Source: Oopsacas minuta
Taxonomy: Eukaryota; Animalia; Porifera
Assembly: GCA_024704765.1 (NCBI GenBank)
Contig: JAKMXF010000055.1
Span: 64,255-128,254, forward strand
Direction: 5' to 3'
DNA: 64,000 nt
Below the pieces are notes generated by a model. It made no database searches. It was not told where the DNA came from and saw only the letters and a program-made list of their open reading frames with translations. The stretch's first letter is position 1; each line of letters opens with the position of its first letter. Position numbers and translations under genes: made by a program. This document shows positions 9,776 to 55,600 of the stretch, one piece after another.

Positions 9776-11144
9776 AAGAGCCTAACATGTAATCTGTTTC
9801 CCTTGACTCACGTTGGTTACTCTCATGTGATCCAAAACACAATTAAACCAATATTCCAAAAGAGTATAATTAATAGTATGGAATTACCTGAGCCAGATCC
9901 AAGATTAGATCGAGCGCTCGGACACAGCTAAGTAAAAGATAAAACAGATGTAAACACAAAACAAAGATTGTTAATATTTGAAAAAAGATAAATGGTAAAG
10001 GGAATAATATGAAATAAAAAATATCCGACAACTAACCTCTCTACATCTCCCTGTGCCTGTGGAAAATACAAATATTTAATCATTGCAAATAAAATATGAT
10101 AAAATTCACAGTTAAATATTAATTAATATGAAATTATACAATAGATTATACGACGGTTATATTACTACAACGTGACATACGTTATGTGTATAATAACGTG
10201 GCTTACAAGTTGAAGAATTCGTATAATTGCAGATAATGAAAATAAGTCAAATTATTATTCTATCTGTTGTAAGGAAAATTGGCCCGTGTTGAGGCAAATG
10301 TCTGTCTACATTTTCCATATGCGATCTGAAACACGAATTGATAAACCATATTCAGTTAGGGGTTACTCACCATTTTATCAGGAATAATTTCCTACTAGTC
10401 AGAAAAGTTATGCACTTTCTAGCCAGTTTCAAGCAAATTCGAAATAGCACCGTACACGTCCAACGCATAACTTGAAACCCATAATAGATAAGCACCGACA
10501 TTTTGAAAACACGATTAAAAGATAAACAAATAACAATTCTATTAAAAGATTATAACTAACATTAGCTTATACTATTAGTGTATTAGTAATTGTATTTGTG
10601 TTTGACAGATAATAATACAATAACTACACGCAAGTTCATTAGTAAAGGAAATAGGTTAATAGAAGTGTTACTATATTGAAAATATATCCAATATTGTATA
10701 TTTGTTCATTCCTGAAGAAATACTATTAACTTCTAATCCGCAGAAGATAGATTGAATTACTTATTAGTATTTGTTGGGTTTGTTACCATATGTCTGATAA
10801 TAATCTCATTAGTATGCTCTACTAGTGTAATAATTCGATCGTAATTAACCATTTTTGGAACGGTGCTAAGAATTATTGATAATCCCAAATCGGTTACAAT
10901 TGCTTTCAAAGCGTATTTCCCAAAAATATGTCAAAAAGTATTTGGGGAATTATAAATCAGTTAGCATGAGTATCCCTCCTGAATGCTTAGCACATATATT
11001 TGCTATACAAATTAAGTTCGTTTGTCTCATCATTATGGGTCAATCATTCCATTGAATTTTGATGTATTCAAGCAAATGCTGAGCTCAGTATTGTTGTAAA
11101 TACAATTATAATAGCCACAAGGTTTACCTTAATACTTCCTAATG

Positions 11145-13477
11145 CAGTGGTTCTCAAACTTTTTCTCATTGCGTACCCCTCAAGCTGGATCTTGTGTGTG
11201 ATGTACCCCTTAAAATGGCCTGCACTGTAAATATTAGGTTTACAATCCCTTTTACCCAGTTGTGAAAAATAAGAGTGTTTTTTTATTCTAGCAATATAAA
11301 TAAAGTAGATAATTAATTAGTGGGAAGGATGTGCTTGCATGTTGTGTATCAGGCTATCAATTCGTGGCACAGTTTTTGAAAGGGCCAGACGGAGATCAGC
11401 TTCCACAGACAACCGCGCTCGAAATTTGTTTTTAATTAGTAATAACGCTGAAAATCCTTGTTCACAAAGGTAAGTACTTGGAAACATCAACAAGATTTTT
11501 ACTGCTCTATCTGCCACGTTGGGATATATCAAGCTCATTTCGCACCAGAACTTTGTGAGTGCGAGTGTTTCAAATTGATCTCGGGCAATAGAATCATTGA
11601 CTAATTCAACAAATTCCTCTTGGACTCTGTCTGGTATAGAACTTACATCGCATCTAAATGGATTTCGAATCATTTTCATGTCCAGGTCGCTCAAGTCTGG
11701 GAAGTAAGTTTGAAATTCATTTCGCATTGCTGAGAGGTGAGCCTTTACTAGAGCACCTATACTTTGATCTGTAGTACCCTCTTCTCCAAGAGTTGCTGAG
11801 AGGCTTTCAAAAAAATCGAACTTTCCCACGGTTAACTTTGCTTCCCAGAGTTCTAACTTCATAATAAATGCCCGAATCTTGTCCACACAATCAATCACGG
11901 TAGTAAACCGTCCTTGGAGGGACTTGTTGAGCAAGTTGATCCGCGAGAAGAAGATATCATTTAAGTAGGCGAGTTTTTTCAGCCATTCTTTGTCTGAGAG
12001 TTTGTCGAAGAATACTTTTGACTTCTCTTTCCCATCTCGTTCAAAGAATTCAAGCAATTCGTTTTTCAGTGAATATACTCGAGAGAGCATGTTCCCTCGT
12101 GAGAGCCAACGAACTTCAGTACAGAACAGCAAATTCTGATGTTCAATATCTAATTCTTGGCACAATAGGCGGAACACACGTGTATTAGGAGCACTGGACT
12201 TGATAAAATTGACCATGGTGACAACATCATCAAGAACAAGTTTAGATCGGATGGAAGTGTTTTAGACGCAAGAGCGTATCGGTGTATCATACAGTGATTG
12301 TGTTTCGAAACGGGATTCACTGTCTTTACCCGAGCTCGAAATCCCGAATTAATTCCAAGCATAGCAGGAGCACCATCTGTTGTGCAAGCAGAAACATTCT
12401 TCCAGGATAGTCCCATTCTATCAAAGTAATCAGAGACCTGCTGGAAGACATCTTCTCCTTTTGTAGTTGTTTCCAAACAATGGCAAAATAGGAACTCTTC
12501 CTTGAAGTCCCCGTCTTTGATGTACCGTGCAAATATCAGTAGTTGTGCACAACTAGAAACATCCGTTGACTCATCAAGTTGAATTGAAAATGTGTTCAAC
12601 GGGGCTCCCAAAATCTCAGCAACTACCTGCTGCTCAACGTCATCTGACATATCTGTAATTCGGCGCTTGATTGTGTCGTTCGAGAGAGGCGAGTTTCTTT
12701 TCGGCGCTATCTCCCGAAATGCAGTGCACGATGTCCTTACAACAGGGGAGTATAAGATTTTCTGCAATCGTATGTGGTTTCTTTTCTTGAGCGAATCGCA
12801 AAGCCACCATGTACGAGGCACGAAGACCTGCTTGAGTCTGTTGACTTTCTTGTCCTCTGTGATCTATACTGATTCGCTTTACTCCTACCTCTTGGTGCTT
12901 GAAGAAATCTATATCCTTATCTGCAAGATTTGGGTGGCACCCGCTTAAATGGCGTTTTAGAAAACTTGGTTTCATCGAGCCCTCAGATAGCACCTTATGA
13001 CATATTACACATTGTGGTAGTTCCCGTCCCTCTTTAAGTATGGATGTAAATCCATATTTGATATAGTCTTCATTATACTTCCGTTTCTTAGCAGATTCCA
13101 TATGAATTTGGTGATAAAGTCAAGGTCTCAAAGAAATACTCTTCTAATTACCATTTTATAAGAACAATACGATACATGAGTGGGTGTGATATTCAAATCA
13201 ATATGAGTTGACACATATGTACGGACAATGGAATCCTTAATTAGCATAACTTCAAACAATAAATATTCAAGGGTGATAATAATTAGTGATGAAACCATTG
13301 TAACTGATACATATTAATTATTTGGCATGAAATAACTATCTATGTGCTGAGTCTGTTGACATGATAGTGTGTAACTCGAAATATTTGTATATGATTAGTA
13401 CAGAATTGATATGATTAGGTGAAACACCGACGCACCCCTAGGAAAAGTGCTGGCGTACCCCAGTTTGAGAACCACTG
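11145..13477 (-). mobile_element. Full-length hAT (Buster/Charlie, ZBED5-type) transposon, 2333 bp
   Basis: Perfect 16-bp TIR CAGTGGTTCTCAAACT at 11145-11160 and 13462-13477; 8-bp TSD TCCTAATG at 11137-11144 and 13478-13485. Confidence 0.97.
11317..13101 (-). pseudogene. hAT transposase with two frameshifts
   Basis: BED finger (CVICHK...LKRHL), QLDESTD, TTDGAPAM, HCMIHR, TEVRWLSRG and FPSTYLCEQGFS spread over three overlapping ORFs. Confidence 0.93.
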
Positions 13478-44378: not shown

Positions 44379-46239
44379 CAGCACGGTTACAGCTGCGTAC
44401 AGCCATTACCATAGAAACCATTGATAAATGTTTTTGGGTTGCATAAAATGCCCTATTAGCAAGGGTGGGGGATAAACCAATGATTGAATTCATAATATCA
44501 ATCCCACTTTTACCAATCCCAGCAAGCTTACCACCCAATACTTGTAACATATTGTGACCAAACATTATTTTATTATCTCCCTCAGTGGATTGGGATCTAG
44601 GGAGCGAATAAAATTCTGAAGAATGTCGACACTGTTCGCAGATAATATACTAATGCTTGACAACACCATTCGTATAACAGGATTGGTACAGTCCTAAATT
44701 TCCTTTCATACAATATTTACACATAGAAACTTCAGCTAAACTGTTTTCAAGTATACTTATGTCAATAAGAACTTGACCATCGACCTTTGACAAATTTCTA
44801 GTTACTGGTTTTTCCTTCCCAATCTGAAATATATCCATATCTTTATGCTGAATACCACCGATACAACTACGACTAAGTTTACTTTCAGAAGTAGTGAGAC
44901 AAACTTCAGAGATGGCTTCTAATTCACACAGCTCACTGTCAACATTATCATCCAACTTAGGGGACTTACTTCGTAGTTCCAACTCTTCAAAATCAGAAGT
45001 CAAACTTGATTGGCCGAAAGAGGTAGGAGGTCGGATAGTTTTCGGATTGAAACGATGAACAAAACTTTTCTTACTTTTTTCTTACCATAAACAAATCAAT
45101 TTGGAGGAATATAAGCAAAATTTGAATCTGTTGCAGTAAATTGTGCAATAGACGAAGAAGGTTGTACAAAATCAAAATTCTTAGGAACAGTATTGACGAA
45201 CAATGAATCATCATTCTTATTTCCGTCACCCTTTGGACCCGGGTTTAGTTCTACACACCCAATTACAAGTAACATTGAGATCACACAAGCAAGAAGAGCT
45301 ATGCCTGACGCAATTTCTAGTTGAAAGTGCTGGGAGAAGAAGAACATTATTCTCTTTGAATTGAATAACCCAATTTTAGCTCTCCAGAGCTCCAAAGCGA
45401 TCATTGATAGAGAAAAAATGACAATAAATATGCTAAAGGTTTGAAGAGAAGGGATTGGTAAGAATAATTGCAAACACAAATGGAATATAGGGATCAATAT
45501 AAATTTCGCGAATAAAAAAGATAACTATGAAACCCAGCAGGGTAAAGCGAGTTTGTTAATGACTAATAAGTAGGATACGGTACATTAAATTTAGGTGCTG
45601 GCCCTAGAGTTTTATAAGGTTTTTTCCTCCATCTGAATAGACTCTCCCTTGTCCAGCCGCATTTACTATCGCTTACTCTGTAGTTCCAGGAAGGATAATG
45701 AAAATGTACAAATTCTTCCTCTGAACTAGGAAGCTCTGGTAGTGACTCTGAGGATTCTGTAACCGTAAAATCCTCCAGCTTCATCCTTTTCGCTGGAGTC
45801 TCTTCAGTTTTCTCCAATCCCCATTTGCGGGTTGTATATGTACATCTTGAGGCTCTCCCTCTGTTTTCAGGTGGGAGATAGCCTGGTGGAGACGTTTGGG
45901 ATTTTGAAAATTCTCGAGACATTCTTATATATTCTATTGGAACATGTGCAAAATTATATCAGCATTGGGGTATATCGAATACTTCAGTCAAATTTCATAA
46001 TCAGACAATCAAATTGTGACACGTGTTGAGATGCGTAATTATTTGTGAGATATGGAAATATTTTAAAGAAGTCATCAGAATATATAACGGCAAAATGCGA
46101 AAAATATTTGAGATATTAATTCAAAACAGCCCAGAAATCTTGGAAAACTTCCTAAGAACCCAAGAATCCAATAAAACAGAAAATATTAGAATTTCAAAAA
46201 TTTCTGAAAATTATGCATATTATATAGGATACTTCCCCC
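44379..46239 (-). mobile_element. 5' part of a TTAA-targeting DNA transposon (Kolobok-like by inference)
   Basis: Terminus GGGGGAAGTATCC (minus strand) next to TTAA at 46240-46243; degraded transposase N-half (QVLIDISIL...CKYC...G; AGIGKSGI...IIGL). Confidence 0.75.
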
Positions 46240-46243
46240 TTAA

Positions 46244-46445
46244 ATAGACGTGAATTCAATGCTCTTGATTTGATATAATTGACAATTTTAACAGCATCAT
46301 CAAATACCATGTGTAATTCTGGGCTCATTTTCTTAGTTGCCAAGGCTTGTTTATGAATCATGCAATGTTGCCATTTTAAATTTGGATTTACTGACTTAAG
46401 GTGAGCAATAAGACCATTTGTGTGTCCTGTTATTGAGGGATCATT
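46244..46445 (-). mobile_element. hAT (ZBED5-type) transposase fragment upstream of the TTAA insertion site
   Basis: SITGHTNGL...QHCMIHKQAL...VKIVNYIKSRALNSRLF. Confidence 0.85.
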
Positions 46446-46606
46446 TGGATTTAGCATATATGGAATTTATCATAATTCATACATACATACTAAGACTATC
46501 GAACATTTACTAATCAATTGAATAACATACCTATGTTGAAAACAAATTATCGTATAAAGGTAACAACCTAATAGTAATTGCAATAGAGTTAAGGTAAATA
46601 CTTGCT

Positions 46607-46720
46607 TATTTATAGTTGAGTGAGTAAGAAGAGTAGATGTGCCTATTGTATTATTCTAAAGTTGTGACTATGGATTAAGTGAAGTGAGTAGTGGAAATTC
46701 TAGAATATTCCAGAATGTTC
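46607..46720 (-). promoter_or_regulatory. Putative heat-shock promoter in the element's 3' region: five-unit HSE plus TATA box
   Basis: TTCtaGAAtaTTCcaGAAtgTTC at 46698-46720; TATAAATA on the minus strand at 46614-46607; CT-A-TT initiator-like site 30 nt downstream (46584); AG|GTATGT donor at 46531|46530. Confidence 0.65.
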
Positions 46721-46821
46721 TTTTTGTCTAAAAATAGAACTCCTTCTAATAATAGTGATATACGGCAGTTTTGACCTATATACAGCCTGCCAAAGGGCTT
46801 AGAAATCTGTTCGTCATTCTT

Positions 46822-49239
46822 CTATAATAGTTCTGTGACTTTGTCTTCTTCTACTTGTGTGTGAAGGTCCATGATTTCGTCATGAAGACGCTGTATCTCT
46901 GTATTGGACTGTTCTCGATGCTCCGTTTGGAGTAGTTGTATGTCTACTGTGGTGGAGCACATACTGGAGGGAATATTTGTGAAGATAGCTGGGTCTCCAG
47001 CTGGTAGCCAGCTTTTTCTATAACTGGGCAAGATCTGGTAGTCAAATAGCCAGGCGGCTATTGACATTATATTACCAGTGAAGAGGGGATCTTGAGCCTC
47101 TAGTTCCTCTATAGAGGGTTCCTCCATTAAGGTAGGAAGGTAACAACTCTTCTCGTTTAATATAGTAGAAAGGGGAGAAGCTAGAAGTAAATTGCTGCTA
47201 GTGCCTTGTACTGGGGCCCCCACTCTGAGGGGGTGCTCTATGTCATGATGTGAGCCAGATCCGCCGACTGGTCCTGTGCCTCTAAATTGGGTCGTAATGA
47301 GATCATGCCAGGACATGTTTATAGGCATGATGTTGAACCTGGAGTTGGCCTGGAACCAATCTGGTCCATTGGGATTGCTTCCCCAGCTGTCGACACTGAT
47401 GTCGCTATGTAGAGCGGAGTGGTCTGAGTCGGGTAATGAGTGGTCCGGACTTGGTGGCATGATAGTGGTGTCTCCTTGATTGTGAAGTGGGACTTCGTGG
47501 CCGATGTTGGAAGGTATATATGTAAGTGTCCAGGTTGGACTTGGCCTTATGGTTGGTCGGTCCCCGATGACGTCATGCATCAGGACCTGGTTAATATGTA
47601 GAAGTTCCGAGGAGTTTAGTGTTCCAGCCCAGAGATCTTTATATGGCGAGTGGTGACTGTGGATTTTACGCCATGTTTTGGACTGGCGGAGCCAGTACCC
47701 GAATTGGTTCTTTAAGAACATGTGGCCAATTGGGTCTCTAGGGTCGAAACCTTTGGCGTAGTGTATTTTGTCCAGGATTAGATCGTGAATCTCTGGAGGG
47801 TAGCCTCTTGCTGGTAGAGATTTTGTGAAGCGTTGCCATACTTCCAGGAATAGGATATTGTTAGACGTAAATATGATGAATCTAATCACCATGATAATGA
47901 GATATCCAAAGTGAAGTCTTGGACTTATCGCATCATAGAGGGGACTAAATAGATTAACCCAGGTGGGTTTTATGTGCACTCTATATTGGCCGGTATGGTT
48001 TATTTCAAAGCCTAGCCAGGCTGCATAGTTATCTGTGCCGGCGTGTTGGATGGTGATTAGCTGTCCCTCTCTCTTGTAGCTTTCCTGTAGTGAGTTGATG
48101 ACTATGTTGGTGTCGTGTGTAGGTGGTATAATCACAAGGATGTCATCGAGATATCTCCCGTGCCACACGTCAGGGTGTCTTTTACGGAATTCTAGGTCCA
48201 ACATAAAAAGCGTGAAGTCCGCTAGAAATGGCGCTGCTGCGCTTCCTTGAGATAGGCCACTCACTTGTTTGTATACTATCTTGTTGACCTGTACGTATGT
48301 GTGTTCTAATAAGTATAAGGATCGCGCCCATACGTTCATGTAGACAGGTAGGAGTTGTGCTGGTACGTATTCAAAGAAATATTTAAATGTTCTATGGACC
48401 ATATTGTGCTTTATGGAAGGATAGCAACCCTCTACATCTAATTCTACTAGGGAGGGGGGCTTTCCATAGTACTGTAGCATACTATCAATGGTGCGTGAAG
48501 CTTGGTCCAGTCCTACGTACTCATATTCAGCATGGATTTCATGGAATCTGAAGAGAGTAGTCAATTCTTTTAAGAAGGAATAGCCAAAGAAGGATATAAA
48601 CTTTGCTGAGGCCTCTAGGTATGAGAATCCCTGTACAAGAATTCTTCCGGGTACTGGGATGCGATTCTTGTGTATTTTAGGCATCATATAAATCTTGGAT
48701 GCGTTGATTTTGTCATAAGAGGATGGATTTGTAACTACTTGATATTTTGATGGATCGTTGATCACCAAACCTCTTTGCTGTTGTAACCATTGTTTGCTGT
48801 GAATACACAATCCCATGCCCTTGTCAGTTTTCCTTATATGCGGGCCTCGCCTTCTTCTTGCATAATAAAATAGCTGTGTTAGTCCCACTGTGAGTGATGG
48901 TGGGAGGAGTTTTGAGCGAGTGGGGAGACTGTTTCTACTTACGTCAATATGCGCGTGGGATCCTAACCACAATAATTGAAGATATGTATCGTTAGGACAG
49001 AGTTGTTCGAAATCCCGATTTCTGTATTCATCCAGGTGTTTGCTGGTATAGTCGAGAGCGACCTCTAGACCCATCTCTCTCACTGCGGTTGGTGTTGCAG
49101 TGTACCATCGGCCTTGGAGAAAGAGTGTGCACATAGTTGACCAGGTTTTGAGCTGTGCCCCGAGGAGGGGTGTGTCCTCCTCGGGGCTAAAAACAAGAGG
49201 CTCTTCTTCTAACTGCGAGACTTGAATAGATCCGGACAT
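46822..49239 (-). CDS. Penelope-type reverse transcriptase, 805 aa, no GIY-YIG domain, ~300-aa unknown C-terminal extension
   Basis: KTDKG, YMMPKIHK..PGRILV, LDVEGCYPSI, YKQVSGLSQGSAAAPFLAD, RYLDD, WLGFEI, RGYP thumb. Confidence 0.9.
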   Translation of the reverse strand: MSGSIQVSQLEEEPLVFSPEEDTPLLGAQLKTWSTMCTLFLQGRWYTATPTAVREMGLEVALDYTSKHLDEYRNRDFEQLCPNDTYLQLLWLGSHAHIDVSRNSLPTRSKLLPPSLTVGLTQLFYYARRRRGPHIRKTDKGMGLCIHSKQWLQQQRGLVINDPSKYQVVTNPSSYDKINASKIYMMPKIHKNRIPVPGRILVQGFSYLEASAKFISFFGYSFLKELTTLFRFHEIHAEYEYVGLDQASRTIDSMLQYYGKPPSLVELDVEGCYPSIKHNMVHRTFKYFFEYVPAQLLPVYMNVWARSLYLLEHTYVQVNKIVYKQVSGLSQGSAAAPFLADFTLFMLDLEFRKRHPDVWHGRYLDDILVIIPPTHDTNIVINSLQESYKREGQLITIQHAGTDNYAAWLGFEINHTGQYRVHIKPTWVNLFSPLYDAISPRLHFGYLIIMVIRFIIFTSNNILFLEVWQRFTKSLPARGYPPEIHDLILDKIHYAKGFDPRDPIGHMFLKNQFGYWLRQSKTWRKIHSHHSPYKDLWAGTLNSSELLHINQVLMHDVIGDRPTIRPSPTWTLTYIPSNIGHEVPLHNQGDTTIMPPSPDHSLPDSDHSALHSDISVDSWGSNPNGPDWFQANSRFNIMPINMSWHDLITTQFRGTGPVGGSGSHHDIEHPLRVGAPVQGTSSNLLLASPLSTILNEKSCYLPTLMEEPSIEELEAQDPLFTGNIMSIAAWLFDYQILPSYRKSWLPAGDPAIFTNIPSSMCSTTVDIQLLQTEHREQSNTEIQRLHDEIMDLHTQVEEDKVTELL

Positions 49240-49253
49240 AGACAGCTCGACGT

Positions 49254-51977
49254 CTATGTCCGGCGACCTTTTGGCTGTTTAGTATTAGCAGAGTTAGGAT
49301 ATAGTTGGTGAGTGCAGAATTGTCTTCTGTGGCCGTATCTTCCACATCCGTTGCACTTTATACTTGGTCTGCCACAAGCTGTGGAGACATGGCCAGGCCT
49401 CTGGCAATTGTGACAGATTAGGGGGTTACGACCCCTGATTGTTTGTGCTCTGTCGAGTTTAGGAGAGTAACTTCTACTTCTGCTCTTAGACCTGAATCTG
49501 GTGGGAGCTCTAATATTGGCTCTGAGGTTGTAAGGTGAACGGCTCCTAGTTTGTGATGGAGTAGGGCTTCTTCCTCTGGCTGGTGACTTTGTTCTAGATC
49601 TTGATCTTCCTTGTTGGTGTCGGACTATATCGTTGGTAGTCCAGTTACTGCCATAGGAGTTGTTAGATGATCTGCTTCGTGACCTAGTGTCACGCCATCT
49701 ATTGTTTCTTCTTCTGTTTCCTCTAGTAAATGAGCTTCTAGAGGTGGAGTTGGATCTCCTTGATCTATTACTTCTAGAGCTGGATCTAGAGAATCTTGAG
49801 GGAGATCGGCCTGATCTGCTAGAGGTGGTGGACCAGGAGGATGAGGTAGATGAGGACCTGCTGGACCTGGATGATCTAGAGGATCTTGAGGAGGCTCTAG
49901 AGTTGGATCTGTAGCCTCTTCTTCCTGGGAGCCTAGATATAGATGGAGATCTGGAGCGAGATCTGCTCCGTTGTCTTGTTCTCCTTGATTTTCTCTGAGT
50001 TGAATTTCTATTATCTCTGCCAGTACTCTTTGGTCTCCGGAAGGTTGTAGAGTCTCTTCTTCGGGAGTTACGTCCAGGGACTGCCTCAGCGTTGTTGGGA
50101 TTAGTGAGGACAGCTGGCTCGAAGACCTTTCCGTCTTGGCTGACGATGTTGAGGTCAGCATCATGATAAAGGTAGGTATGCCTACTTTCACTGAGTTTCT
50201 TGGCATATCTTTGCTGTAGTCGACACTCTCCGTTCAGGTGTACTACTACTCCAGGCATCTTGGTGACTGTAAGGCCGCTAGGATCTGCGTCAGAGATCTC
50301 GTAGTACTTCCAGCTGTGGAGGTAACAGGGGCCGTACTTACAGTGTATATTTCGATGGTCGTTGCCATCGAAATGCCGGTGGTATTGGCAGGTTTTGTCT
50401 CGGTTTCCTAATAAGATGTTGACATCTGCGAAGATGTAAGCTGCTTTTCTGCGCTCATCTTCTTTAAGGGCCTTTGCCATATAGGCCCTTTCCCACTGCT
50501 CCGTAGCTTTCTCTTGTACTGTTACCAGAGCATTGTGTATATCCTGGTAGACAAATAGAATTATCCCCCAGTCTTTTATTCTCAGCGCACTCCCATCTCT
50601 CATTTTTACATCTTCTGAAGAGATTCTGAGTACGTCTATGGCGTCTCTTCCTAGCAACCAGCTCTGTTGGCTTACTGGTAGAAAGCGGAAGGTGCTGCAT
50701 CTTATCTTGTCTGTGACCAGTCGTAGAGCTTTTGGAATGTTGTTTCTGATTTCCCCGGTGATAGTTTCTTTTAAGACGATATTGTGTGCTACCATATCTC
50801 GTAGCTTCGTCATTATCCTCTTGGTTGTGGAGTTGGCTAAGATGTCTCCATCTTCCATTATGCTAATGTTCTCCACATGGTCTGTTAGCATGAAGGTGTT
50901 GATAATTTCTTCTGCTCCGGGATAGTACTCGACTGTGAGTGAGGTGTCTTCCGGTAGGGCATTTAACTCTTCAAAGATGGTCTTGAAGTAGTTTTTCTGG
51001 ATTGATGTTATTAGGTTGTTAAGCTGAGACGAGAGGACAATAAGATGGGAGGTTTCGTTCTGAATCATTGATATTGTGTTGTCCAGCAGCTTGGCTGCGA
51101 CCTCCTTCTTAAATTCGTCTCGCTGACGGGTGGCATGATGTCTAGCGAGGACTTCTTTCTCTGCGTCTTTCAGCCAAGAGGTAGGTATTATAGATCGGAG
51201 GTTTCTGTATTCCTCCTCATCTAGATTTGGGTCGATTCCGACCTGGGTCACCCAGGCTTCGACGTACTTTCGGGACTTTTCCATCCTGTCGAGCCTGTGT
51301 CCTAGAGAGTATAATTGTGTATACTTCTTCTGCAGTTCTGTGGTCTTTCTCTTGAGGAAGGCGTTGGTGAATTTCCTAGTGTGGTTTTTGAGAAAGGATA
51401 TTAAGGTTTGCTTCTTGTGTGATCCTGACGGTCGGAGTCTCAGATTGTCTTGGACGATCTTTCTTAAGAAGCCGGTGTCAAAACCGTATCGTCTATTATC
51501 CTCATGAAGAGAGGAATATTTATTTACTCCCAGTTCCCGTATGTCAGGACGGGATTCAGCAGCTGGGTGTACATTTAATTGTACTGTCTTTGACTTCATT
51601 ATCCCAGGCTTGGTAGGGACTGGGTTCATTCCTGCAGCAATGTCTTCTAGTAGAGCAGCCAGTTCGTCATCTAGTTTTCCGGATGCTCTGTACATCTCTA
51701 TGGTGTCCGCTATGTGAGGCTTCTTGGGGATGAATGGCGCGGCATCGCTATCCAACTTTGATGTGGGGAGCGCATTCATCCTGAAGCGGTCTTCTTCTAT
51801 GAGTGCAGACAGCTGGGCTGTGTCTGCAATGTGCGTGACTTTTCTCGCACGGGGTTCTTCTGTCGATGAGGATGGGACAGACATCTCATCGGGTGACTTA
51901 GTTCGCACGCTCGACATGGAGGGTGCATCTGGAGTGAGTCCATCTGGTTTGGAATAGTGAGCGAGGAAATGTCCCAA
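49254..51977 (-). CDS. Gag-like nucleic-acid-binding ORF1: coiled coil, Cys/His cluster, RS domain, two CCHC zinc knuckles
   Basis: CHNCQRPGHVSTAC and CNGCGRYGHRRQFC; long RS/SR tract; the track start is TTG, the first ATG is at 51917, and the frame is open up to 52133. Confidence 0.85.
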   Translation of the reverse strand: MGHFLAHYSKPDGLTPDAPSMSSVRTKSPDEMSVPSSSTEEPRARKVTHIADTAQLSALIEEDRFRMNALPTSKLDSDAAPFIPKKPHIADTIEMYRASGKLDDELAALLEDIAAGMNPVPTKPGIMKSKTVQLNVHPAAESRPDIRELGVNKYSSLHEDNRRYGFDTGFLRKIVQDNLRLRPSGSHKKQTLISFLKNHTRKFTNAFLKRKTTELQKKYTQLYSLGHRLDRMEKSRKYVEAWVTQVGIDPNLDEEEYRNLRSIIPTSWLKDAEKEVLARHHATRQRDEFKKEVAAKLLDNTISMIQNETSHLIVLSSQLNNLITSIQKNYFKTIFEELNALPEDTSLTVEYYPGAEEIINTFMLTDHVENISIMEDGDILANSTTKRIMTKLRDMVAHNIVLKETITGEIRNNIPKALRLVTDKIRCSTFRFLPVSQQSWLLGRDAIDVLRISSEDVKMRDGSALRIKDWGIILFVYQDIHNALVTVQEKATEQWERAYMAKALKEDERRKAAYIFADVNILLGNRDKTCQYHRHFDGNDHRNIHCKYGPCYLHSWKYYEISDADPSGLTVTKMPGVVVHLNGECRLQQRYAKKLSESRHTYLYHDADLNIVSQDGKVFEPAVLTNPNNAEAVPGRNSRRRDSTTFRRPKSTGRDNRNSTQRKSRRTRQRSRSRSRSPSISRLPGRRGYRSNSRASSRSSRSSRSSRSSSTSSSWSTTSSRSGRSPSRFSRSSSRSNRSRRSNSTSRSSFTRGNRRRNNRWRDTRSRSRSSNNSYGSNWTTNDIVRHQQGRSRSRTKSPARGRSPTPSQTRSRSPYNLRANIRAPTRFRSKSRSRSYSPKLDRAQTIRGRNPLICHNCQRPGHVSTACGRPSIKCNGCGRYGHRRQFCTHQLYPNSANTKQPKGRRT

Positions 51978-52549
51978 TCTGGCGGCTGAGATGTTGAATC
52001 CAGTGAGGAAGGTAAGAGGGGCTTCTGTGACAACATCTCGGTCTTTGCCTTTTGAGGTAGTATAGCTGAAACCAATGCTGGCGTACCAGTACGGACATCT
52101 CCCGCATTGTCTGCAAAGTATTGCGAAGCTGATCTAGACGAGTTCCTAATATAGCGGACGATGAGTGCTCGTCTGGTGACATAAAAGAAATCGAGGAACT
52201 CCTTGTCGGTCCAATTAAGAGTGGAAATGATCCCGTCCAGGACGAAATCCTCTGTAGTAGGGTGTATTCCTCCCATGTTGAGTCCTTTGGCTCCGAGTCT
52301 TGCGAAGTCTGTTCCTTCTCCGACCCATACTCCTCTTCCATACATGCCAATGCCTCCCGAAATTGCACTGCCAGGAGGGTATATAAGCTCCTCATCATCA
52401 GTTTGTATAAGATCTGGGGGTCTTGTAACTGGTATGCCATCAAGAGAGGGAGGGGGATTTTCACCTGTAAATATTCTAAGATGTGGTCTACGTGGTGGAA
52501 TAATATCATCAGTAGACACAGAAATGATATCGGCTTCGTTAGTCGCCAT
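51797..52549 (-). CDS. ORF0 of the retroelement, 250 aa, overlapping ORF1
   Basis: ATG in a strong context (A at -3, G at +4) 6 nt inside the 5' repeat; no known motif. Confidence 0.55.
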   Translation of the reverse strand: MATNEADIISVSTDDIIPPRRPHLRIFTGENPPPSLDGIPVTRPPDLIQTDDEELIYPPGSAISGGIGMYGRGVWVGEGTDFARLGAKGLNMGGIHPTTEDFVLDGIISTLNWTDKEFLDFFYVTRRALIVRYIRNSSRSASQYFADNAGDVRTGTPALVSAILPQKAKTEMLSQKPLLPSSLDSTSQPPDWDISSLTIPNQMDSLQMHPPCRACELSHPMRCLSHPHRQKNPVREKSRTLQTQPSCLHS

Positions 52550-52599
52550 AATTTTCTATGTTGAAAACAAATTATCGTATAAAGGTAACAACATGTTGT

Positions 52600-53196
52600 C
52601 TAAAATAGATCTAATGGAACTGTCAACAGACCAAGCAAATTTTCTTTTAGTTTATTGCTAAGATTCGTTTCAGAAATTGACTGAGTTGCAAAAGGAGTAG
52701 TAATCCAAGTATTTGTCAAATCTCTTAGATCTATTTCAGAAAAATACTTCAGAAAAGTATTCGCAAGTATTGTTAGGTGATTGCTAATTATTACCATCAC
52801 TCTCCCTGTGAGAACTACATTTTCAATGATAAGATTGCTGAGCGAATCAAAAGTGGTGATATCTCCTTTTTCAACTTGAGTAACCCCCTAATACAATACT
52901 TTCTTGTAAAAGCCTTTCACTTTGTCATGTGCCTGAAAAATATTAATATCAAATCCTTGCAACTGAAGATTTAGCTCGTGTATTTTACTGAATACGTCTG
53001 TAAGATAAGCTAATTGACAAACCCAGTCTTCGTCCAAAAATGAACTTTCAAATCAGATTTCATATCTGAGAGAAAAGTACATACTTCGTGTCTCATTTCA
53101 AAAAGTCTCGTCAAGACTCGTCCTCTCGACAACCACCTGACCTCAGTATGCAACAATGATTGCGTGTGGTTTGCCCCCATTTCTTCACACATTATT
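52600..53196 (-). mobile_element. hAT transposase fragment downstream of the TTAA insertion site
   Basis: KIMCEEMG...HTEVRWLSRGRVLTRLFE...YFSE...WITTPF; joins 46244 in frame across a single TTAA (SRLFKIMCEEMG). Confidence 0.85.
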
Positions 53197-53200
53197 TTAA

Positions 53201-55600
53201 GGGGAAAGTATCCTGAAACAACCTTATAGTGAAAGTATTTGATAAATTTGGCCCAAATTTCTAGTAGGTTTCTGACCCCCTTCGATCCTTCCAAAAATGC
53301 ATTAATATTAGCAAGTATTAAAAATCTAAATTCCTATTTGAAATTTATGGATCAAATTTCTAGAAATAATTTAAAATTTTCAAAAGGCTAATTACATTCA
53401 ATAACTGTTTTAAAACGTTCAATACATTTACAAATAGCTTTTCTACTCACTCGATTTTCTATAAAACAACCAGGAAGTAATTTTGGATTTCCCAAGCTTT
53501 GGTTGAATTTACATGTGGGCATTAAAAATATTTTATTTAAATTATCGTATTTTTAGACTTTAAATCAAAGTTCGAAAGATTAGAAAAGTTACAAAACTGC
53601 CTAAGCTACCAGAATCCGTTTACAAATCAGTAATCGGTAATATATATTTAAAATTATGATTTTTAGACATGGAAATTTTTACATTCTGAGATAATCGCCC
53701 AGAAAGTAAGAAATTTACATAGAATGATGTTTTCAATAGTTTAAAGGCTGGAATATGCTAGTATACTAAGAATACAACTAAATACAATAATATATTACAA
53801 GAGAACACAACTATACTATCGTAAAAGATACATAAATAGGGTATATCTATGATCGCTGACACGTAGGACATATCCATAGCTCTTCCGCATTTACACACAA
53901 AACACTACCATAAATATTATTCAGACAGAAATTATGAAACCAGCTATTACACACATCAAAACAGGTCCAATCAAATACATCTATCTTAGCAACCTTTTTA
54001 CTATTAGATTTAGCACCACTGTTCTCATCACCACCACACAACATACAACAAACATCACTACTAACACTTACATGTGAATATGCACCACTCTTATATCCAT
54101 CACCTAATCTCTTCCTCCTGCGTTTGGATTGCTTTATTGACCATCTACGTTTCGTGTACTCTTTACCTTTCTTTAATTTGCTAAAATCTATTCTATCATT
54201 ATCAGACGAACTACAGAAGCGTATAAAGGATTGTGAAGGTTGCAATCCTAACTCCCTAACTAAATCTGTAATACCAGCAAAACCATCATTGTACTTAATG
54301 ACAGCGAGGCTTGATCCAAAATGCATCAGGTCCAGGTCAATTGCTCTTGTTTTAGGAATAAAAGACCAAATGACATTGTGCAAACTTTCATTCAAGTTTG
54401 ATGTCCTACCCGCCTTCACCTTATCTAAAAATGAAAGTGTCATATAGGGTCCTAGGATTTCAATGAGCCGGTCTTTGCATGATTGAGAGAGAGCTGTTGG
54501 ATGTGAAGGTATGGGATCTCCTAAGAATTTTGCTCTCCTATAGTGACACCAAGAGCTCTCACCTTCAGGACAAAACTGATGCATTTCGGAGCAATTCTCG
54601 TCTGTAGCTGCTAAATGGTAAACTATGGCCAATAATAAATCCCGAATTTCAGGTAATGTAGAAGTAGAATTAGATTTTATGGTATAACCATACAGGGAGG
54701 TGATTTTGTCAATAGTAGAGTCTGATAGTAATTCGATGTCAAAACTACTTTTATCTAAATCACTATCGTCCCATTTTTCCCTTACTAATTTAGAGTCACG
54801 AAACGTAAAAGGTCTATAAGCCTGCCTAATATGCTTCTTCGCTTTCTCAGTTTTAGCTACAGCCAACTCATGTAGCATCAATGTTTTTTGAGAAGCTATA
54901 AATTGCTTCTGTTTTTCCACCAAATGTATTTTGATACGTTTTTGCACGTGACTAAGGCATTCCTCACGTGAAATAACAACTCCATATTCACCATAAATAT
55001 CAATGTCGACCAAGATATTCATACTTTTGTCATCCCCATCCGCAACCACAGTAGAATATAATAATTTTTGGTCAATAGACTTACGAAAACAACAGGAGCT
55101 AACTTAGACTCTAAAGCCACGGAAGTATAATCCCCATATTCCTTTGCTTGGCATGTTTCCCGTGCTCGACTAGCCATAGGAAATAATCCTCCTTAGACAA
55201 CCTCTTGCTTTTAGAGCTTCTTGTTTTTCGACACAATATCAACAACCGTTGCAAGCAACTTCAAAGCTTAGTATTTAGCCGCTTTCTATGGAAATGGCTG
55301 CAGCAAAACAGTACCTCGCAAATCCGCCACCACCTTTCCCTGTCCTTTTTTGATAGGCACCATCATACGAAACTGCAACACTCAGAAATTCATCCCCTTG
55401 TTTTATGATACATGTTTCTCAACTTTTCAGCAGCACGGTTACAGCTGCGTACAGCCATTACCATAGAAACCATTGATAAATGTTTTTGGGTTGCATAAAA
55501 TGCCCTATTAGCAAGGGTGGGGGATAAACCAATGATTGAATTCATAATATCAATCCCACTTTTACCAATCCCAGCAAGCTTACCACCCAATACTTGTAAC
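53201..55600 (-). mobile_element. 3' part of the Kolobok-like transposon with catalytic region and PHD finger
   Basis: AVSYDGAYQKR, ADGDDKS, EECLSHVQKR, TSNLNESLHNVIW and a C-terminal PHD-like finger (ORF 53847-55049); terminus GGGGAAAGTATCC at 53201-53213 beside TTAA at 53197-53200. Confidence 0.8.

Follow-up and report, generated by a model that had tools for sequence, protein, structure and literature searches.

The locus and its coding capacity

In a 64-kb window of the genome of the glass sponge Oopsacas minuta (64,000 nucleotides of contig JAKMXF010000055.1; coordinates without a prefix are positions in this window), an exact 37-nt sequence occurs n = 2 times, at 46531-46567 and at 52556-52592, in both cases on the minus strand and with 0 mismatches. 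The two copies are 6025 nt apart; a shuffle control gave such matches in 0 of 100 shuffles. Reading along the minus strand, GTATGT (46530-46525) comes next after the 3' copy, whereas the 5' copy runs into AAAATT and the ATG (52549) of an open reading frame (ORF), ORF0. This difference had been noticed in an earlier, sequence-only reading, and both a search of the window and the minus-strand read confirmed it. Three intact ORFs (250, 907, and 805 amino acids) lie between the copies, and the G+C content there is 0.40-0.47, compared to about 0.35 in the flanks. Judging from these features and from the comparisons below, positions 46440-52592 (minus strand) appear to be a full-length copy, and a young one, from a lineage of Penelope-like elements (PLEs) that has not been described. 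The sequence-only reading had the element running from 46531 to 52592; the limit on the 5' side holds, but on the 3' side a 91-nt tail continues to about 46440. No further fragments of the element were found in the window. The O. minuta assembly was made with Canu, and DNA transposons and unclassified elements account for most of its repeats.

ORF2 (46822-49239, minus strand; 805 amino acids) seems to encode a PLE/TERT-like reverse transcriptase (RT) without an endonuclease. Its only Pfam match was a weak one, to RVT_1. The alignment of the ORF2 family has the DKG motif, which is diagnostic of PLEs, as well as PKxHK followed by GRPIV, RYLDD, and a long thumb that ends in RGYP. A word-based protein search identified four relatives at about 60% identity, all from ENA metagenome assemblies, and an exhaustive search added more fragments of the same family and otherwise only RTs at about 25% identity. 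One of these distant matches (P0136) is an RT with a C-terminal GIY-YIG domain, and it is colinear with ORF2 over 322 amino acids at 25% identity. Both architectures that are known from endonuclease-bearing PLEs are represented among the distant matches. No relatives of ORF2 were found in GTDB genomes or in IMG/VR. The AlphaFold model of ORF2 is confident for residues 130-540 and disordered for residues 542-706. When we compared this model to the PDB with Foldseek, the top 15 matches were all telomerase reverse transcriptases. PLE RTs are the sister group of TERT, so these matches are consistent with a PLE RT.

We did not find a GIY-YIG endonuclease, either as a Pfam match in any of the ORFs or as a nuclease fold in ORF2 residues 542-706; the PLE class includes accepted members that lack the endonuclease. 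There was also no Rfam match to a hammerhead ribozyme, either at the gathering threshold in the whole window or at E <= 1 in 46380-46900; Naiad and Chlamys PLEs lack the ribozyme as well (PMC8557442). Features of long terminal repeats (LTRs), a primer binding site, RNase H, and integrase were not found in the Pfam analysis of the ORFs or in the ORF2 model. An LTR retrotransposon, a pararetrovirus, or a DIRS-Ngaro element is not supported: the Pfam matches are to RVT_1 and, weakly, to zf-CCHC only, and the ORF2 model contains no RNase H or integrase fold. Overall, the sequence points to a PLE-type retroelement of a new endonuclease-less lineage with three ORFs, an assignment that is based on motifs, alignment, and fold matches.

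ORF1 (49254-51977, minus strand; up to 907 amino acids) is gag-like: it has long predicted helices, an Arg/Ser-rich stretch, and two C-terminal CCHC knuckles. Its structure model is mostly long helices, its only Pfam match is a weak one to zf-CCHC, and we found neither families nor relatives of solved structure for it. A gag-like CCHC ORF upstream of the RT has been reported in one Chlamys PLE. The Arg/Ser-rich stretch is long (residues ~660-850, or 49500-50100 on the minus strand), lies upstream of the two knuckles, and is similar to the RS domains of splicing factors and to the Arg-rich tails of some capsid proteins. ORF0 (51797-52549, minus strand; 250 amino acids) starts with MAT, as do its counterparts in two of the relatives described below (L004 and L005); protein and Pfam searches detected neither relatives nor domains for it. 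ORF1 overlaps ORF0 by 181 nt (51797-51977) in a different frame, and ORF2 starts 14 nt past the stop of ORF1 (49239-49256). No obvious slippery site was seen at the boundaries between ORF0, ORF1, and ORF2.

The terminal repeat and the 3' module

Four to five divergent relatives in other assemblies have the same module at their 3' ends, namely a TATA box, a conserved block, a leader (the counterpart of the 37-mer), a splice donor, and a tail. We compared the 3' ends of the window copy, L001, L004, L128 (both strands), and L129. In the window, the module begins within the 3' untranslated region (UTR; 46568-46821, minus strand), which seems to double as the promoter region of the module. The TATA box (TATAAATA, 46607-46614, minus strand) aligns with the TATA boxes of six related 3' modules. 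The conserved block (TATTGCAATTAC, 46574-46585, minus strand) lies about 30 nt past the TATA box and is the likely start-site region; its general form is TATYGCA, and the TATA box and the block align in six modules. The 3' copy of the leader (46531-46567, minus strand) ends with a pyrimidine-rich stretch and AG, and in all of the leaders that we compared, the last 20 nt are pyrimidine rich and end with AG.

The leader is followed by a predicted 5' splice site, GTATGT (46525-46530, minus strand). In five modules, the donors are GTATGT, GTACGT, GTAAGA, GTAAGC, and GTGAGT (consensus GTRNG): G+1, T+2, and G+5 are kept in 5 of 5, and the boundary AG/GTRNG is kept in all five despite divergent surroundings. 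Next comes the tail (46440-46530, minus strand; 91 nt), which appears to be part of the element, and its true 3' end, rather than flanking sequence. We assign it to the element because its downstream neighbors differ in every copy and because on the minus strand of L128 it abuts the ORF2 of another copy. Tails vary in length from 71 to 150 nt, and leader and tail together make up 128 nt in the window copy and 108-194 nt in the relatives. The terminus of the tail is conserved (46455-46440 in the window): it reads CTAAAATCCAAAATGAT, followed in most copies by AGAGATTWTAGC. The window tail ends in AAATGAT (46440) and is about 12 nt shorter than those of the relatives.

L001, L128, and L129, which are 5'-truncated, also share the end of the tail as their 3' terminus, as does a solo 3' module of about 190 nt (L129:13750-13944, or L129b). 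L001 and L129 both begin in ORF1, and L131 is 5'-truncated as well. A shared 3' terminus combined with 5' truncation is a signature of target-primed reverse transcription that starts at the tail.

In the 3' UTRs, a motif, ATCCATGGTC, recurs upstream of the TATA box and is sometimes found in hairpins (L001:12378-12415, L002:11853-11930, L129:10500-10515, and L005:5232-5320). Its version in the window is ATCCATAGTC, near 46680. A TCCAT that resembles this motif is also present near the end of the tail.

The most informative relative is L004, an independent full-length copy with its own leader of 43/44 nt, which differs from the leader in the window. Its 5' leader (L004:6347-6389) is followed directly by TACC and the ATG of ORF0, which is the same arrangement as the fusion of the 5' leader in the window (52556-52592, minus strand) to AAAATT-ATG. 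Its 3' leader (L004:12521-12564) has one indel relative to the 5' copy and is followed by GTAAG. So, in two lineages with different leaders, the 5' repeat ends at the conserved AG/GT boundary. Splicing explains this directly, and a target site duplication (TSD) cannot, because target sequence is unrelated between insertions and has no reason to end at a donor. Another informative arrangement is on the minus strand of L128, where another, truncated copy begins immediately after a 309-nt 3' fragment (9973 to 9665) that contains promoter, leader, donor, and tail. Leaders differ strongly between lineages, and even within one sample (L004 and L129b). L130 and L131 are decayed fragments and provide no further 5' ends, and a scan of metagenome contigs (JGI, ENA, and GenBank records) with 15-mers of the leader gave chance matches only.

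The 5' boundary of the repeat is not fixed: the repeat extends for 37 nt in the window, for 43 nt in L004, and for about 77 nt or more in L005/L006. The length of 37 nt therefore has no special meaning. The sequence-only reading had taken the 37-mer for an exon, which still seems right; that it is the whole exon does not, as the boundary varies (37, 43, and at least 77 nt) and the 37-mer is probably just the 3' part of exon 1. Because the conserved block is the likely start-site region, the first exon probably starts 12-17 nt upstream of the 3' 37-mer, near 46579-46584.

L004 seemed at first sight to have a 10-bp TSD (ATGTACAAGC), but we rejected it: the downstream copy (12657-12666) lies inside the tail, which ends at 12714. 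L004 probably has no clear TSD and a small target deletion instead. The 10-nt identity is between L004:12657-12666 and L004:6318-6327, the latter in the Harbinger sequence that borders the element upstream; it may be due to chance or may be a trace of microhomology. The L004 tail apparently has a small internal duplication in this same region.

Some copies of the family have palindromic or inverted junctions. At the 5' junction in the window, the sequence-only reading had described a perfect 12-bp palindrome, ACAACATGTTGT, and we recovered it at 52599-52588; it consists of 5 nt of inverted leader start plus AT. A far larger palindrome is at L005:3634-3689, with perfect 27-nt arms and a 2-nt center, and it has a counterpart at L006:4384-4441. 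There, a full 5' end faces a copy on the opposite strand that starts with 27 nt of this 5' sequence, joined to ORF2 at codon ~320. Both cDNAs appear to end at one RNA 5' terminus. Palindromic junctions have been described for PLEs and related to self-priming (PMC3846280). The 12-bp palindrome is a small version of the L005/L006 palindrome and, alone, is weak evidence; the earlier suggestion that it hints at fold-back or template switching is supported by the 27-nt arms in L005/L006 and by the PLE literature. Inverted truncated copies are also found in L002 and L128. The insertion at L128:8115-13557 is compound, with the minus-strand partial tandem, a head-to-head copy on the plus strand, and then a further 5'-truncated copy; the plus-strand copy has a hairpin with a 17-nt stem after its tail (about 10920-10966). 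Thus, partial tandems, inverted truncated copies, and palindromes, which are hallmarks of PLEs, are seen in the relatives, and the window copy shows the 12-bp palindrome only.

Origin of the terminal repeat

The sequences support the view that the repeat is one exon that is present twice, spliced onto ORF0 at the 5' end and left unspliced at the 3' end. This is what the sequence-only reading had proposed, and the boundary in L004 and the AG/GTRNG in five modules both fit it. We further propose, with a probability of roughly 0.6, that the window copy was derived from a spliced RNA that was longer than one unit and that started in an upstream 3' module. Transcription would begin in a 3' module that lies upstream of a copy, as in a PLE-style partial tandem or a pseudo-LTR, and the leader would be spliced to an acceptor just before ORF0. 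The transcript would then continue through the body of the element and into the copy's own 3' module, where the donor would have no partner and would stay unspliced. If reverse transcription starts at the conserved end of the tail, then copying this sense, spliced RNA would yield leader, ORFs, promoter, leader, GT, and tail, in that order. A head-to-tail pair could regenerate the same RNA: the tail and the next leader would together form the intron, and the pyrimidine-rich AG end of that leader would serve as the acceptor. A partial tandem such as this proposal requires is present on the minus strand of L128. Also, in Penelope and Chlamys-3_cRei, the start site is in the pseudo-LTR and an intron of the 5' UTR extends across the junction of the pseudo-LTR with the body (PMC8557442), and reverse transcription of PLEs initiates internally in the RNA, which produces the tail (PMC11167929).

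Several observations weigh against this proposal. None of the three full-length copies (window, L004, and L005/L006) has a 3' module upstream, and no intron-bearing master copy, which we infer to be a tandem, was found among the copies compared. The 5' end is intron-less in both the window and L004, and probably in L005 as well, where the boundary cannot be placed and the 3' module is disrupted, and all that is left is the donor and tail at the 3' end; PLEs are known for retaining introns, not for losing them (PMC8557442). The promoter does not fit perfectly, either: the 37-mer starts 47 nt past the TATA box instead of about 30 nt, and in L005 the 5' boundary of the repeat extends into the region equivalent to the TATA box. 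In addition, no TSD accompanies the window copy, whose two flanks do not adjoin each other in the target, and the host clade trans-splices a spliced leader (SL) of about 37 nt (PMC10282587).

That last point leads to the strongest alternative, in which the leader is added in trans. The 3' module would be a mini-gene similar to an SL RNA gene, and its RNA would donate the leader to the acceptor before ORF0. Even solitary copies with read-through transcription from a host promoter would acquire the leader in this way, and the leader may be the host's own spliced leader. We consider trans-splicing to be unlikely, but it has several points in its favor. Tandem master copies are not needed, which fits with all three full-length copies lacking an upstream module, and a solo module of about 190 nt does exist (L129b). 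The leader exon is followed by a GT donor, as expected for an SL RNA gene, and the 128 nt of leader plus tail (108-194 nt in the relatives) is within the size range of SL RNAs. The end of the leader is acceptor-like, which would allow repeated rounds; the genes of dinoflagellates carry relict leaders from repeated trans-splicing. Finally, hexactinellids do trans-splice: according to the genome paper for Aphrocallistes vastus, the leader is about 37 bp and has many variants (PMC10282587).

The details of the module fit less well with an SL RNA. None of the five tails has an Sm site (RAU(3-6)GR), and leader plus tail folds no better than shuffled sequences do (z about 0). There was no match to an Rfam SL family in the whole window, or at E <= 1 in 46380-46900. 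The strong divergence of leaders between lineages, and between L004 and L129b from one sample, also argues against trans-splicing, as does the presence of the leader in the window at the element's two copies only. A bolder form of this idea, that the 3' module is a working SL-RNA-like gene and that the spliced leaders of glass sponges were encoded, or seeded and dispersed, by the terminal modules of PLEs, is more doubtful still. If it were true, each 5'-truncated insertion would drop a mini-gene with promoter, leader, and donor, and, for this lineage, the origin or spread of SL trans-splicing would be tied to a retroelement that also caps its own RNA in this way.

Alternatively, the repeat might have formed by template switching without any splicing. 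The RNA would start at AAAATT, and on reaching this 5' end the RT would jump to the leader of a 3' module; this could take the form of an R-like strong-stop transfer or of a terminal redundancy like that of pararetroviruses. Terminal redundancy is a common device of retroelements, and the family does show template jumps and palindromic junctions (L005/L006 and L128). However, the jump would need to land exactly on the conserved AG/GT boundary in two lineages, there is no homology between the 5' end of ORF0 and the tail to guide it, and the element lacks LTR, primer binding site, RNase H, and integrase features. We consider this explanation, in either form, improbable.

Two other explanations raised by the sequence-only reading have little chance of being correct. 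If the 3' donor were back-spliced to the acceptor before ORF0, the template would be a circular RNA of 6025 nt, and both the donor and the acceptor-like end of the leader are positioned correctly for this. The tail would lie outside such a circle, even though it is conserved, forms the end of all copies (among them the 5'-truncated ones, which share it as their 3' terminus), and is present in the partial tandem of L128. The conservation of the tail outside the circle implies that the template was linear and included the tail. In SL genes, the TSDs of CRE/SLACS/NeSL-type elements measure about 49 bp, and a direct repeat does flank the unit here, but a long TSD in an exon, or site-specific insertion into an SL-like target, is refuted by L001, L004, L128, and L129. 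Leader, donor, and tail accompany the element into flanks that are unrelated to one another (pieces of hAT in the window, a Harbinger pseudogene in L004, and other sequences in other copies). Leaders vary from one lineage to the next but agree inside a copy, both donor and tail show conservation, the L128 tail abuts element sequence, and the RT is PLE-type, not non-LTR.

Insertion site and known systems

The surroundings of the window copy are unusual. The 108 nt upstream and the 200 nt downstream have no word of 7 nt or more in common, so there is no sign of a TSD at that length. Both flanks derive from one hAT-like pseudogene, but they are out of order: the part of the transposase that is encoded upstream (53200-52600) comes later in the protein than the part encoded downstream (46439-46240). 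A Mutator-like transposon (MULE; PF20700, E = 6e-6; ORF at 53847-55049, minus strand) of about 4.1 kb had inserted at a TTAA in this hAT-like transposase pseudogene, at a point that lay between the two parts in the original gene. The inverted ends of the MULE (46226-46244 and 53196-53214) comprise about 14 nt within a 19-nt, 95%-complementary inverted repeat, and the last 5 nt of the 19 are the duplicated TTAA site. The hAT reading frame resumes exactly across the MULE insertion (SRLFK / IMCEEMG). The MULE itself is now split, with an exact 170-bp repeat at the outer ends (44379-44548 and 55431-55600), and it was once continuous across these 170 bp, because the reading frames show continuity.

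The order within the block at 44379-55600 is 170 bp, MULE part 2, late hAT, the element, early hAT, MULE part 1, and 170 bp. By its sequence, this block appears to be a circular permutation of hAT plus MULE with the retroelement at the join. The permutation could have arisen by end-to-end template jumping from the RNA of the element to a read-through RNA of hAT and MULE, by capture of an endonuclease-less element at DNA breaks, or by re-integration of a circle; all three are possible.

PLEs are the least understood class of eukaryotic retroelements: their template RNA, their retention of introns, and the origins of their pseudo-LTRs and tails are all in question. If the repeat is what we propose, then the sponge lineage preserves a record of the template, as an exon that had undergone splicing at the 5' end but not at the 3' end. 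Such a pattern would favor a sense, spliced, longer-than-unit transcript from a terminal module and would disfavor an antisense or unspliced template. The element also adds glass sponges to the known hosts of PLEs, and its gene set is unusual in combining three ORFs and a gag-like ORF1 with the lack of an endonuclease; our literature search found no paper that connects PLEs with sponges.

Parts of this anatomy are known from other systems. Chimeras from twin priming or template switching by L1 include head-to-head, 5'-truncated copies like those in L005/L006, L002, and L128, and the permuted hAT/MULE flanks of the window copy are possibly alike. In contrast, the junctions in the sponge family are perfect palindromes, as described for PLEs, and there is no poly(A). 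CRE, SLACS, and NeSL-1 have a leader-like exon followed by a donor as a flanking direct repeat. They belong to another RT clade, however, and the sponge repeat is borne by the element rather than being a duplicated target, and its insertion sites are unrelated. In recycled dinoflagellate cDNAs with relict spliced leaders, a leader that ends in AG is fixed at the 5' end of the retrocopy and can be used as the next acceptor. Those are host genes with a host SL, whereas the sponge leader seems to come from the element's own 3' module.

Among PLEs, those that lack the endonuclease (Athena and Coprina, as well as the endonuclease-minus offshoots of Neptune and Chlamys) share with the sponge element an endonuclease-less RT and an upstream ORF with coiled-coil-like helices. 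Those elements are telomeric, and at the 3' end they bear hammerhead motifs and telomeric repeats in reverse complement, whereas the sponge element is interstitial, in the debris of DNA transposons, and has a different conserved 3' terminus.

Penelope of Drosophila virilis and Chlamys-3_cRei differ from the sponge element in that the full-length sponge copies seem to have lost the 5' intron, so that the terminal repeat is the exon only (37-44 nt or more) and not a pseudo-LTR. The sponge element also has three ORFs, with a CCHC gag-like ORF1, and it has neither GIY-YIG nor a hammerhead ribozyme. Its tail (71-150 nt) is longer than the canonical PLE tail of 30-40 bp and is intron-like rather than the start of an ORF. 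What they share is a PLE-type RT, a promoter and first exon in the terminal (3') region with a donor at the end of that region, a tail past the repeat, and copies that are 5'-truncated, arranged in partial tandems, or inverted with palindromic junctions.

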